DNA of 64,000 nucleotides from Phaeosaccion multiseriatum (GCA_965112735.1 OZ218953.1:2108001-2172000), one strand, 5' to 3'; positions 4,701 through 58,000 are shown, numbered from the stretch's first letter. A program made the numbers and translations. The notes: generated from the letters alone by a model not told the origin.

Positions 4701-7700
4701 TGGGTGGTGCGCATCGCCGTCAGCAACAGCAGCAGTTGGTGCTACAGCAGCATGTTCCTTCGGTGACGGCCTGTAGGGCGGCGACGGCGGTGCTGAGGCA
4801 GCTCGGGCCAGCAGGTAGGAGATAAGGGCAGTACAGAGAGAAGAGAGAGCAAGCAAAGCGAAACAAAGCGAGGCAAAATAGCAGCGCTTGGTACAGAGAG
4901 AGAGAGAGCCAAGCGAAGCCAAGCGAAGCCAAGCGAAGCCAAGCGAAGCCAAGTGAAGCATCATTGGAGCACTGAGGAAGGATCACGTAGGGGCGTTGCT
5001 TTGCATCCCATCCGTCGCGGCCCGTCTGTCTGTCTGTCTGTCTATCTGTCTGTGTGTCTGTGTGTCTGTGTGTCTGTCTGTCTGTCTGTCTGTCTGTCTG
5101 TCTGTCTGTCTGTCTGTGTGTCTGTCTGTCTGTCTGTCTGTGTGTCTGTGTGTCTATTTGTCTGTCTGTCTGTCTGTCTGTCTGTCTGTCTGTCTGTCTG
5201 TCTGCCTGTCTGTCTGTCTGTCTGTCTGTCTGTCTGTCTGTCTGTCTGTCTGTCTGTCCGTCTGTCTGTCTGTCTGTGTGTCTGTGTGTCTGTGTGTCTG
5301 TGTGTCTATTTGTCTGTCTGTCTATCTGTCTGTCTGTCTGTCTGTTTGTCTGTTTGTCTGTCTGTGTGTCTGTCTGTCTGTGTGTCTGTGTGTCTGTCTG
5401 TCTGTGTGTCTGTGTGTCTGTGTGTCTATTTGTCTGTCTGTCTGCCTGTCTGTCTGTCTGTCTGTCTATCTGTCTGTCTGTCTATCTATCTATCTGTCTG
5501 TCTGTCTGTGTGTCTGTCTGTCTGTGTGTCTGTCTGTGTGTCTGTCTGTCTGTGTGTCTGTCTGTGTGTCTGTGTGTCTGTCTGTCTGCCTGTCTGTCTG
5601 TCTGTCTGTCTGTCTCTTCCTCTGCCTCTGCCTCTGTATCCGACCCGACCCGTCTGTCTCTACACTGCCGTTTTGCTCGTCTCATGTGTCCGTTACTGAT
5701 CCCCATTTCCTCTCTCTCTATGTATGTGTATGTATGTCTGTGTGTGCATGTGCGTGCATACGTTTGTGCGTGCGTGTCCCTGAACAGCCGGAGAGGCGTT
5801 GGGTGGCCCCATGGTCTCTCGTCTCCTTCCGTGGCTGAGCCTCGCTCTCGCCCTTGATGGAGCCCCGGGGAGCGGCGGCAGCTCGGAGACCGGAAGTGCA
5901 GCCCGCTCAATAGTAGCAGCAGCAGCAGCAGCACAAGGAGGAAGGGGAGGAGGGTCCAACCCTCGATCGAAGGGGCTAGGGGTGGATGCTGTCTCCCTAT
6001 CCACCAAGGCTCAGCTGGCCTCTGCAACGTACGTGTGTGCGGGAGAGCGGGGACGTGCGTGTGTGCGTGCGTGCGTGCGTGCGTGCGTGCGTGCGTGCGT
6101 GCAGCTCGCGTCAGTCTCTTTTCTACTCATGTCTTTCTATCGTTCGCTCTCTCTGTCTCTCTCCCCTTTCTCTTGTCTCTGTGCTGCGAGGACTTCTCCC
6201 TCTGTGCCTCCTCTCGGCGACAATTGGTGTGCATATCAAAGCCTTTTGGCCACTCACACCACACCCTCTCCACCCTTCTCTTTCTTTCTTCGCCTTTCCG
6301 TCTCTCCCTCTCCCATTCTCCCTCCCTCTCTCGCTCCCTCCCTTTCTCCGTCTCTCTCTCTGTCCTCATCAACGACAACAGGAGTGCGAAGAAGAACAGC
6401 AAGAAGAGGAAGCGAAAAGAACTCAACAGAGCCACCAACGCAAACGCCAGCGCGGAACCCTCCGCCAAGACCCCCAGGAAGGGCGGCAAAGGGGCAGGGA
6501 CGGACCCCGGGGGAGAAACCGACCCAGGGGGGGACGCTACCCTCGGCCGGGTGTCAGGACACGGACCTGTGGTTTCTGTGGAGGTGTGCGTGGCCGCCTT
6601 GGAGAGCCTCACTCAGGTGCGTCATGTTTGGCTAAAGCTACGTACAACCTACCCCCCAACAGCCACCTCCCAACCCCCCACCCCCAACCTAAATCCTCCC
6701 TTCACGCACACACACGCACACGATTACGTAAGTCTTAGGTTGATTCCCATTAAGTCAATGAATTTTTCCCTCCCGCAACCCAACCCAACCCCTCCCTCCA
6801 CACCCCCTCCCCGCACTACTCTCAGGTGGTCTATTGCGTAGGCTGCCATCTGCCCCGATCCACTCGCCTCCGCCTTGAACAGGCCGTGGGGCAGGGTCTC
6901 AGGCATGTGCAGGCAGCAGCGTGCCAGGACGTACTGCTCGCCCCCCCGGGTTCGTCCGGCGTGCTCTCCCGGGGTGGAGGGGGAGGGGGAATTCCGAGTC
7001 GAGGTGGGGAGGGGTGGAAGGCCTCGCCCGTGGCTTGCTCGGCGGAGGTGCTCGCTTCGTTCCTTGCGCTGGCGCAGGTGAGTTTGGTTGATGTAGTCGG
7101 TTGGGTACTTTCTCTCCTATCCCAATATCTCCATCTCTCTCTTATCTCTCCTTCTTTCGGCCCGTTGCACTTCCCTCTCTCTGTCTCTCTCTCACACGCC
7201 CAAACGCCGCTCAACCCCACCTCCTGCTCTGCGCGAACACACACACACACGCACACACACACTCGCGCATACACACACACAAACACACGCACCCCTACCC
7301 CCCCCCCCTTTCAGGCCTGCATCATCGCTCCTCGCCAGGATGGGACGGGAAGTGGCCATCTCCTCCCTCTGGCCTTAGCTGCCTTCGGTAAGTCGTCTGT
7401 GTGCGTGTGTGCGTGTGTGCGTGTATGTGTGCGTGTGTGTGTGCGTGTGTGTGCTGGATAGAGAGGGATAGAGAGAACACTTGCCCCCTCTGGCCTTGGT
7501 TACCTTCGGTGAGAGAGATCAGACACAGAGAGAGACGCGAGCGAGTGCCGTGCTGCTGCTGCTGCTGCTGCTGCTGCTGCTGCTGTATCACCAACTGCTG
7601 CTGCTTCTACTCTTTGTTGGTTGCCCCTCTCTTGTCCTTTGTGCTTCCCTACGCTATAGAGGGAGCAAAGCGGGTCCGTAACGAGAAGGTGTCGACTGTG

Positions 7701-55000: not shown

Positions 55001-58000
55001 TCACGTATGACTTGCTGGGCTTACGTGATCCTTACGTACCTGAATATGGGGTCGTGACCATGTCCAGAGGAGGTTCCAAGTGGTGCGCAGCCCCAGGCCT
55101 GTGGGCAGCTCTTCAAAGGCTCGGAGCTGATTGTTCAGCACATCAGTCACAATGTTGTACACCTGTTGGTGATACAGAGGAAGGGAGGGAGGAGGGAGGG
55201 GGTAAGCGGGTGGGGAAGGTGAGTGTGGAATGAGGCATGGCGTCTAGACGCGAGAGGGGGGCGAGGGACGGCCCCCGGCTTTAAGTGCCCCCGATGGAGA
55301 AAGGGAGAGAGCCTTAGAGAAGGGGGAAGGCGGCCCGCCTACCTACCTCTGGCCTAGCCTTAGAGTTGACTCGGTAGTGGATGGTATCGGGAGAGCCTCC
55401 ACCGTACACCAAAGAATTCGCCAGCGCCCCTGCTTCCCCACCTGGGCCTGCGCTGCTTCGGCTGTGTTGGTGTGTTTGGGTGTCCGCCAGGGGGGAGGCA
55501 AGTGCGAAGGGGAGAATGGGTTGGGTTGGGCTGGATGGGGTAGGAGGAGTAGGGTGGGGTTAAGTGGTGATGGCCTTCAAAGGGGGGCAGGGCTAGGGGT
55601 GGACTCAGTAGGACAGTTCGCCGCAGCCCCCCCTCCTGCCCAGAGCCCAGAGTCCAGAGCCCATTCGACTCTCTTCCTTCCTGACCTGGTGTTGGGCGGC
55701 TGGAGGTCAGCACTCGAGGCGGAGTTGGGCTCACCCCACCCAACCCTACTGCACCCCCCCCGGGGAGCAGCAACGGCAGCAGCAGTTGGTGATACAACAG
55801 CAGCGGTAGAGCGTCCCTCTTTGCCGGCAGTGGTGTTCATCCAGTCCCTGCTCTTGTTGCTGTTGTTGCTGTTGGTGATGCTGATGTTGTTGTCCTTGTT
55901 GTTGTTGGTGGTGTTGCTGTTGTTGCTGTTGTTGATGTTGGTGTTGTTGCTGTGGTCGTCATCGTCGTCCCAGTCATCTCCAAAGCAGAACACGGTGGCG
56001 TAGTCCTTGAGAACGCGTTGATAGAGCACGTACATCTTCCACTGAGAGACGAGTAGAGTCTCCTCCTGGCGCGCACTCATGCCCCCTCCGGACCGCCGCC
56101 GAGTGCTCACCTTCACCACACCGGACGGGACGGGACGCGACGGGACGACCAAAACAGGAGACGGGCAGGGGAGGTGGCGCGGAGAGAGAGAGAGAGAGAA
56201 GGCGACACACACAGAGAGAGAGAGAAAGGACGTAAGTCAACTGGACAGAAGCTCCAATGGTGAGGAGGCCCTGTCAGAGACCTTCAGGGACGTCTTTGGG
56301 CGCTCGGAGGGAGGTATGGTTGGGCTTGGTCTGTTCATAGCATGGCCTGGTCTCTCTCTCTCTTCTGTCTGTCTCTCTTTCCCTCTCTTTCCCTCTCTTC
56401 CTCAGTCTGTCCCGCTCTCTCTCTCTCATGGCCTGGTCTTTCTCTTCTGTCTATCTCCCTTTCCCTCTCTCTCTTCCTCAGTCTCTCTCTCTCTCTCTCT
56501 CTCTCTCTCTCTTCCTCAGACTCTCCCTCTCTCTCTTTGTGATTCCGTTCGAATCCTCCACGTGAAGGTGGGGCCGGCGCACGCACACACCTGTAGGCTC
56601 CGGTTCATCTCACAGGTGATGGAAGAGTCCTGTTGGCGTGTTGTTTATACGGTAGGCATATTGGTTGTACGGTAGGGCAGGGTACAGCCGAGGAGGGAGA
56701 AAGAGAGAGTAAGCGTTTGAGTGTGCGTGTGAGAAAGGTAGACACAGACGGAGACAAAGAGAGAGAGGAAGAGAGACAAGAGACAGACGGCGAGTCCCTC
56801 TCCAATCAAAGCGAATGGGAAAGAGTGTGCGGGAGGAAGCGGCAGCACCAAAGAAAAGGGGCCGAGCGTACGTACCCACACTCACACGCACACACACATA
56901 CGTACACACACGTGCACACACACGCACACACACGCATGCACGCAAGCACAAACACACATGCACGTGCGCGCACACACACACACACACACACATACACACA
57001 CACACACACACACAAAGACACGCACTCACGTGGTACATGGAGAAGATGGCGGCGAAGGACGGATAGAGCCCCGAGTAGCGCCCGACACCGCCCTGGGACC
57101 TGACACCGGGCTGTGACCGGGCCCCGGCAGGCAGCAGGGTAGCAGTTGGTGATACAGCAGCAGGGGCAGCCACCGGTTTCGAAATGCGATAGCTCTGGCC
57201 GCCAGTAGCAGTACTGCTGTTGCTGCTGCTGCTTCCTCTGCCGGGGTGCGAACCCGTCCTCTGCCCTTCGCCGCTATTGCTAGAGTCGCCAGGTGGAGTG
57301 GACGAGAGCCCCTGCAGACCTACTCCTGGGACTGCATCACCAACTGGTTCTGCTGTTGGTGCTGGTCCTGCCCGTGCTGACACCCCAACCTCCAGTCCTC
57401 TGTCATACTGCTGCCCCCCCTCGTCAGCCTCCTCCTCCTCCTCCCCCTCCTCCTCCTCCTCCTCCTCCTCCTCCTCCTCCTCCTCCTCCTCCTCCTCCTC
57501 CTTCGCCCTCAACGCCTCTGACGAGGTGCTTGATCGAGGTCGGCGCTGCCCCGGTCGGGGAGGCCTTGACCAAGGGCGGCACGGCTCGAGGGGTCTCGTT
57601 GGAGTGGAGGGTCGCGGAGAAGGGACAGAAGCATCATGAAACGACGCTACCCTTGACAAATGCAATGGCCTTGACCCTGCTGTATCACCAACTGCTACGG
57701 TCCCATCCGCCGCCATCCCCCCTGACCGAGAGGTCCTCTGTACCACCCCAGCCGCAGTCCCGGCCTCAGCCCCTGGCTTTGCTGCCCAGACAGATGTTGG
57801 AGAGCATGTTGCCTCAGTCTCAGCTTCAGCTGTATCATCACTATCGATGTCGCTCCTCAGTCCCACAACAGATCTCTGCCCCTCTCCCTCTGCTCTCCCG
57901 CTCCGTAGCTCAGTGACTAGTTGCCGGGCTTGGTCGTCGACATCACCTTCGTATCCACCTGGCCCGTCGTCGCCTCCCTCTTCGTAGGATTCTCTATCTT

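Follow-up and report, generated by a model that had tools for sequence, protein, structure and literature searches.

How could one short, non-repetitive word come to lie between CAG triplets at more than 20 sites within 64 kb of a eukaryotic genome? The question is raised by a stretch of 64,000 nucleotides from Phaeosaccion multiseriatum (GCA_965112735.1 OZ218953.1:2108001-2172000; hereafter the window, to which all coordinates refer), in which the 9-nt core TTGGTGATA recurs on both strands, flanked by CAG, in exons, introns, and spacer DNA. Below, we describe the word and its distribution and weigh the ways in which it may have spread. We favor the reading, with a probability of roughly 0.4, that a unit of ~21 nt, (CAG)1-2-TTGGTGATA-(CAG)2+, spreads by template-directed copy-and-paste that is primed by CAG (micro)homology and involves no transposase.

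Abundance and divergence of the word

A first-pass annotation of the window had reported ten exact copies of the 14-mer CAGTTGGTGATACA, and all ten were found at the positions and on the strands that it gave, five per strand (Table 1), in comparison to none in 100 dinucleotide-preserving shuffles. Every near copy on its list was recovered as well (those entered as near copies in Table 1), and an additional weak near copy was detected at 25002. With up to 2 mismatches allowed, the 14-mer matched 21 sites (10 exact and 11 near), whereas 0.31 were expected. In a k-mer census, motif words ranked first in frequency among non-simple words at k = 10, 12, and 14, and they kept this rank after the tandem repeats (23% of the window) had been masked. 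The density in the window is approximately one copy per 3 kb, coding exons included.

The divergence of the copies was assessed with the 15-mer CAGTTGGTGATACAG, for which 9, 7, 4, and 5 sites were found with 0, 1, 2, and 3 mismatches, respectively; the corresponding means, obtained from 300 control words with permutation confined to the inner nine bases, were 0, 0.02, 0.55, and 2.75. Once this background is subtracted, the spectrum fits a Poisson distribution that averages close to 1 change per 15 nt, equivalent to ~6% decay, and a steady trickle of new copies matches it about as well as the single decay mean. One further occurrence of TTGGTGATA, at 18944, was set aside as a chance match within a conserved kinase exon (DDFYHQHH). 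We conclude that the word is real at the level of this assembly.

Anatomy of the unit

Alignment of 21 sites revealed conservation from -4 to +20 around the 14-mer, a span of ~21-25 nt that reads G-CAG-CAG-TTGGTGATA-CAG-CAG-CAG; outside these limits only a CAG periodicity was seen, and it fades. The triplets on both sides are CAG on the core's own strand and never CTG, with the one exception of the copy at 55163, where the upstream triplet is CTG. Some copies are free of CAG tracts: those at 21356 and 57333, for example, have a single CAG on each side, which indicates that 3 nt of junction identity is enough, and the copy at 55163 also lies outside tracts. The long CAG tracts at copies (ten or more units) all sit 3' of the core (4 of 4), and the CAG run was longer on the 3' side in 10 copies and on the 5' side in 3 (sign test, P ~0.09).

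The core is either present whole or absent. Neither a truncation series nor an excess of half-sites was found in the window, and successive 8-mers across the core occur at even frequency (12-20 each). When the ±300-nt flanks of twenty copies were compared pairwise by BLAST, separate loci were found to share only 18-33 nt of motif and CAG sequence; the few longer flank matches (up to 93 nt) reflect similarity of CAG tracts. Since the flanks share no further sequence, the window holds no longer parent element, and by the same 8-mer counts and BLAST comparisons no copy in it runs upstream into unique sequence. Head-to-tail 12-mers were absent from the window even at 3 mismatches, which rules out a tandem satellite or minisatellite, and the nearest copies on the same strand are 36-39 nt apart. 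The 15-25-nt unit lacks inverted symmetry, as one end reads CAGTTGG and the reverse complement of the other reads CTGTATC. Within a single exon, the inverted pair at 57143 and 57681 is identical over 22 nt, including a non-CAG GTAG prefix, and looks like the product of local copying.

Distribution along the window

Approximately one-quarter of the CAG tracts with at least 5 units have a copy at or beside them. The annotation had also described the copies as clustered and missing from 31-55 kb. This description is correct: the copy-free gap at 30.7-55.2 kb (24.5 kb) exceeds the expectation from CAG sites, with P values of 0.002-0.009 under four null models in which the copies were dealt over CAG, AGCAG, or CAGCAG sites or over CAG tracts. 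The copies are therefore clustered regionally beyond the availability of targets.

The interval from 30.7 to 55.2 kb contains 15-20 CAG tracts, two of them of ten units (at 41366 and 42367), and zero copies of the word. A sulfotransferase-like open reading frame (ORF) and an ankyrin ORF of 731 codons lie in this interval, where GC content is slightly reduced.

Host genes and reading frames

Two minus-strand genes were identified by Pfam, a protein kinase (Pkinase) at 31.8-33.7 kb and a member of the TTL family at 52.7-54.5 kb. The gene labels proposed earlier were confirmed only in part; the YAK1/DYRK label comes from a reading of kinase motifs, by which the plus-strand gene at 16-25 kb appears to be DYRK/YAK1-like, and PELP1 is a tentative label. 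The 659-codon C-terminal exon of the minus-strand kinase gene contains four copies, all translated as Q-[LW]-V-[IM]-Q.

For exonic copies as a whole, the readings are QLVIQ (n = 8), AVGDT (n = 5), and antisense VSPTA (n = 2), and the translations bore out these three readings and the unused TGA-containing frame as first described. The absence of the TGA frame is nonetheless weak evidence, as the AGC frame is used in only 9 of 70 sense CAG tracts in presumed exons and the probability of 0 of 13 is ~0.16. CAG tracts in presumed exons are themselves sense-biased (70 sense versus 13 antisense), which accounts for the sense bias of the exonic copies. The codon usage of the word was uninformative, with a G+C content at third codon positions of only 0.63. 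Because the word occurs in three frames, on two strands, and in intronic and spacer DNA, it is not a protein motif; the initial view of a nucleotide-level unit that is independent of frame and strand holds, and the unit is copied rather than selected as a peptide.

Several copies have a splice context. The copy at 9520 had been placed between genes, but its position downstream of a GTGAGT on the minus strand indicates that it may be intronic. Two cores without CAG flanks, at 10412 and 12178 on the minus strand, follow GTRAGT donor-like sites by ~10 nt. The antisense copy at 55163 seems to end a pyrimidine-rich intron (...CACCAACAG/GTG, where the slash marks the junction) and to supply an acceptor of the TTL-family gene; if this role is true, splice sites could be shifted, or new ones formed, where the word inserts. 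A 9-nt mini-intron (GTGATACAG) was considered and dropped, as the TGA frame is avoided, not rescued, and the piece is far too short.

Table 1. Copies of the word and loci of a second dispersed word in the window
Feature	Position	Strand	Context
Near copy (1 mismatch, GTGCTACA)	4733..4746	+	QQLVLQ in plus-strand ORF 3875-4822
Exact copy	7584..7597	-	(CAG)11 next in motif orientation; antisense to plus-strand gene, probably intronic
Exact copy	8362..8375	+	AAVGDTAA in ORF 7392-8507
Degenerate copy, GTAGCAG-TCGCGGATA-CAGCAGG	8394..8416	+	3 core changes
Near copy (2 mismatches)	9520..9533	-	48 nt past GTGAGT donor-like site 9580(-); (CAG)6 upstream
Core only (ATTGGTGATAC)	10412..10422	-	No CAG flanks; 10 nt past GTGAGT at 10430(-)
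Near copy (2 mismatches), GTAG prefix	12142..12155	-	36 nt downstream of 12178 copy
Core only (GTTGGTGATAC)	12178..12188	-	No CAG flanks; 9 nt past GTAAGT at 12196(-)
Exact copy	20712..20725	+	AAVGDTVT in exon of putative DYRK/YAK1-like gene
Exact copy, tract-free (ctg-CAG...CAG-aca)	21356..21369	-	Antisense, 5' end of intron, plus-strand kinase gene
Exact copy	22359..22372	+	GAVGDTAA in large plus-strand exon
Near copy (2 mismatches)	23945..23958	+	QQLAIQ; then (CAG)9
Near copy (2 mismatches)	24878..24891	+	QQLVMQ
Near copy (1 mismatch)	24917..24930	+	QQLAIQ; (CAG)5 upstream, (CAG)16 downstream
Weak copy (CTGTTGGTGGTACA)	25002..25015	-	No CAG flanks; membership doubtful
Exact copy	29876..29889	-	AQQLVIQQ in C-terminal exon of kinase gene
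Near copy (1 mismatch)	30116..30129	-	QQLVMQ; then (CAG)8
Exact copy	30587..30600	-	QQLVIQQ in C-terminal exon of kinase gene
Near copy (1 mismatch)	30671..30684	-	QQWVIQQ in C-terminal exon of kinase gene
Near copy (1 mismatch)	55163..55176	+	Minus strand ...cttcct-CTGTATCACCAACAG/GTG; candidate acceptor AG, intron of TTL-family gene
Exact copy	55783..55796	+	Antisense to minus-strand gene; AVVSPTAA if exonic
Exact copy, GTAG prefix	57143..57156	+	Antisense in exon 57030-58757(-); AAVSPTAT
Near copy (1 mismatch), no CAG tract	57333..57346	-	EPVGDAVP
Exact copy, GTAG prefix	57681..57694	-	VAVGDTAG; 22 nt identical to inverted copy at 57143
GATGGCAGTGGA(T)	9599-9628	-	
GATGGCAGTGGA(T)	21091-21130	-	
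GATGGCAGTGGA(T)	25615-25674	+	
GATGGCAGTGGA(T)	30832-30843	-	

Searches beyond the window

Rfam scans of the window at the gathering threshold gave no hits, and tRNA scans of it gave no tRNAs. The 20-mer had nine single matches in metagenomes and four in prokaryotic genomes, which corresponds to chance level. A match of the 17-mer in viral contigs was rejected as unrelated, as it falls in one orthologous phage gene (...AVAVGDTAK...) of AT-rich contigs; the seven phage contigs involved (33-38% GC) have this gene segment in common and contain the 17-mer by coincidence. A full-text literature search on the word in both orientations retrieved four papers, all unrelated, with one strand and no papers with the other, in agreement with the statement of the first-pass annotation that the motif is undescribed.

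Word-indexed protein searches returned no match for the kinase exon or the 57-kb exon and only generic ankyrin proteins for the ankyrin ORF, and when 1.84 billion representative proteins were searched exhaustively, neither a self match nor a close relative turned up (best E-value 6e-8, to a kinase lobe). This best match is called as one gene range of 35 kb, in contrast to the compact genes of the window, and comes from an NCBI contig of 700 kb that belongs to another assembly. Exact-product look-ups of window ORFs found nothing.

Proposed templated copying between CAG-flanked sites

Any mechanism must account for a core that is always whole, the same triplet at both junctions, a fixed orientation, the triplet phase, the lack of a visible parent, and the clustering. 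As a word of ~20 nt cannot arise so often by point mutation, it must be copied. From these constraints, we infer a break, a priming step, and a template. In the reading that we favor, a break or nick, mostly in a fragile CAG tract, would leave a DNA 3' end that finishes in CAG, and this end would pair with the CAG located 5' of the word in an existing copy, with the template being another locus, most readily one nearby, or its transcript. Extension would then proceed over the 9-nt core into the CAGs past it, and the new CAG end would re-anneal to the far side of the break. Such an event could be synthesis-dependent, gene-conversion-like, or microhomology-templated repair, and every product would be a fresh template, resulting in self-feeding spread. 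Re-annealing out of register on the 3' side would produce the longer downstream CAG tract. The all-or-none core, the single orientation, and the triplet phase would follow because homology is confined to the CAG flanks, and the clustering is as expected if nearby copies are preferred as templates. Templated fill-in at breaks guided by microhomology of 1-5 nt has precedents in the interstitial telomeric inserts templated by telomerase RNA (PMC2246262) and in templated sequence insertion polymorphisms (PMC5110952).

Two mechanisms had been suggested when the word was first noticed, a binding site that spreads by molecular drive and the footprint or templated insert of an element or RT. Of these, a templated insert that targets CAG microsatellites suits the anatomy better because of the fixed orientation, the CAG at both junctions even outside tracts, the whole-or-absent core, and the lack of a longer parent, whereas the footprint of an element is a poor fit because the unit lacks inverted symmetry. 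We conclude that homology-guided template copying is better favored by the window than any element-based model.

Several points nevertheless weigh against templated copying. The very insertion of the word is something that we infer from the arrangement of its copies. Sharing of the GTAG prefix (3 of 16 copies) is not significant by itself (P = 0.09), and a prefix subfamily was accordingly dropped as proof that copies were made from copies. Arbitrary donors should at times bring along non-CAG flanks, and none were seen except in the 57143/57681 pair. Only positive feedback would account for the dominance of one word, CAG-tract polarity has no more than an ad hoc explanation, and a second word, GATGGCAGTGGAT, is dispersed in a non-CAG context. 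Finally, we know of no organism in which ectopic templated repair is this frequent.

If the word is copied as proposed, it would be the smallest dispersed eukaryotic repeat unit known to us (9 unique bases), present at very high density, and coding sequence would have been edited in place with its frames unbroken. Its spread would reveal either a new type of repair-driven movement of sequence between microsatellites or a new templated writing enzyme, and it would offer a natural system for studying the origin and stabilizing effect of CAG-tract interruptions, a matter central to triplet-repeat instability. Annotation and repeat-masking pipelines will miss such a word, and spurious "shared motifs" among unrelated proteins are to be expected.

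Alternative explanations

An unlikely, though serious, alternative to templated copying between loci is that a reverse transcriptase (RT) writes the word at CAG-ended nicks or breaks from a dedicated RNA template. The enzyme would be telomerase-like, Penelope-like, or encoded by a long interspersed nuclear element (LINE), and the RNA would be a 20-30-nt "micro-retroposon" with a (CAG)n 3' tail by which it would anneal to the target's CTG strand. Such a source would suit the uniform unit, its one orientation with respect to the CAG strand, and the long CAG run 3' of the core, which resembles a retroposon tail, and the mismatch spectrum is compatible with a burst. Microsatellite-preferring retroelements do exist in algae (PMC8557442), microsatellite-like 3' ends of retroposons influence priming (PMC6007223), and telomerase RNA can be copied into breaks (PMC2246262). 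The window, however, contains no source gene, no RT-linked or longer copy, and no 5'-truncation series; it lacks the tandem 12-mers expected of a processive telomerase-like enzyme, and its regional gap would be unexpected for a diffusible template. Also doubtful is a dedicated "writer", an RT or polymerase whose template is fixed and which would repair CAG-ended breaks by inserting one 9-nt word. If such a writer exists, the word would be a genome-wide, self-amplifying mark that interrupts, and perhaps stabilizes, triplet repeats and lengthens many unrelated proteins by 3-4 amino acids; mobile or written DNA of this kind would form a new class, far smaller than any known element.

Three candidate sources related to these proposals were dropped. 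A telomerase product was rejected, as the telomere-like repeat differs from the word and no tandem copies were found; the hairpins at 60.07-60.48 kb, considered as a small-RNA source, have no similarity to the word; and a stub of a LINE or a short interspersed nuclear element (SINE) seems a poor match, as a truncation series and longer copies are both missing from the window. At 3850-3895, just past a GTGAGT donor-like site at 3835, there is a telomere-like (GGGTCA)n run that is unlike the word.

It is improbable that the word is the remnant of a conventional CAG-targeting element, whether an excision footprint, a solo terminus, or an ultra-short non-autonomous DNA transposon with a 3-bp CAG target-site duplication. 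A CAG direct repeat does surround the 9-nt core even outside tracts, although a target-site duplication would look the same as CAGs belonging to the unit, and DNA transposons that target microsatellites are known (MuTAnT family, PMC4486113). The absence of inverted symmetry means, however, that the unit is not a fusion of two inverted termini; the 64 kb yielded neither half-sites nor full-length elements with such ends, and footprints are usually heterogeneous whereas the copies here are uniform. Moreover, no known transposase acts on a substrate nearly as short as 9-15 nt. A footprint of a miniature inverted-repeat transposable element (MITE) or other transposon was rejected on these grounds of symmetry, half-sites, and size.

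We likewise give little credence to a selected DNA or RNA signal, either a protein site or an interruption that stabilizes CAG tracts, whose spread would be secondary to its function. Half of the copies are exact, and at human disease loci triplet repeats are stabilized by interruptions. Read on the CTG strand, the word makes up the loop of a CTG hairpin, which exceeds shuffled sequences in stability (z -2.5) and could fix or disrupt slipped structures. The word also contains a Myb-like CAACTG and a GATA core. The mismatch spectrum, in contrast, resembles neutral decay at ~1 change per 15 nt with the core included; exons, introns, and spacers are occupied alike, with no positional rule relative to genes; and a copying mechanism would be needed anyway, as point mutation cannot produce a ~20-nt word thousands of times. 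A binding site spreading by molecular drive, as first suggested by analogy to DNA uptake sequences (DUS), HIP1, or PRDM9 motifs, is a poor fit to a word of ~20 nt with obligatory CAG flanks and ~6% apparent decay.

An artifact of sequencing, base-calling, polishing, or library oligonucleotides in CAG repeats is highly improbable: although low-complexity repeats are prone to systematic base-calling errors and the word is bound to a single strand of one, copies exist outside any CAG tract (21356, 57333, and 55163), diverged copies keep frames open and match an evolutionary decay spectrum, one copy apparently gives a splice acceptor, and runs from an RNA-kind search (run type unconfirmed) contained 95-96% of the words sampled from a 3.1-kb exon with two copies.

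Other sequence features of the window

A second dispersed word, GATGGCAGTGGA(T), was found seven times, mostly as pairs 18-48 nt apart and often in G-rich surroundings; each of its loci (Table 1) is ~60-700 nt from a copy of the main word. Tandem Repeats Finder (TRF) arrays with a period of ≤12 number 547 and occupy 23% of the window. Many GTRAGT donor-like sites directly precede G-rich simple repeats, and pyrimidine-rich repeats are located before acceptors, a pattern that suggests strongly strand-polarized introns. The 10-mer GTCCTGACAC occurs five times, at 6551(-), 11446(+), 18530(-), 39889(+), and 52358(+); at 18530 its reverse complement, GTGTCAG/GAC, is the acceptor junction of a kinase exon, and the 10-mer may be a recurrent acceptor-site word.

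Comparison with known systems

DUS, HIP1, Chi, and the repetitive extragenic palindromic (REP) sequences and bacterial interspersed mosaic elements (BIMEs) resemble the word in occurring approximately once per 1-5 kb, on both strands and in several frames, with constraint at the DNA level. These prokaryotic words differ in being 8-12 nt long, free in context, and bacterial, and REPs are ~35-nt palindromes moved by the REP-associated tyrosine transposase (RAYT); the word described here is eukaryotic, non-palindromic, dependent on obligatory CAG flanks, and apparently decaying. Its over-representation is tied to the CAG flanks and the CAG strand, unlike the free context that is the criterion for DUS and uptake signal sequences (USS), HIP1, and Chi.

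MITEs and the MuTAnT family (PMC4486113) are, like the word, non-coding and high in copy number, with a preference for a single microsatellite and flanking direct repeats. The word has no terminal inverted repeats and is 5-30 times smaller, and no autonomous partner was found within the window.

Among retroelements that target microsatellites, the Naiad/Chlamys Penelope-like elements show an insertion bias toward (CA)n, (C)n, or (TA)n (PMC8557442), and RTE-type SINEs and LINEs have microsatellite-like 3' ends (PMC6007223, PMC2887409). They share with the word an association with simple repeats, a repeat common to target and tail that hides target-site duplications, and the existence of microsatellite-flanking families. 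These elements differ in being hundreds of bp to kb in length and RT-encoding or RT-dependent, with truncation series and pseudo-long terminal repeats or 30-40-bp tails, whereas the word has only 9 non-repeat bases and no longer copy was seen.

Interstitial telomeric inserts (PMC2246262) and templated sequence insertion polymorphisms (PMC5110952) offer a further comparison. In contrast to the telomeric inserts, the word is not a telomere repeat, is never tandem, has the same triplet at both junctions, occurs at ~1 copy per 3 kb with coding exons included, and is known here from its sequence alone. What these systems have in common with the word is a short, fixed, templated sequence that is found at many unrelated loci, joined through a few nucleotides of microhomology and with no transposase.

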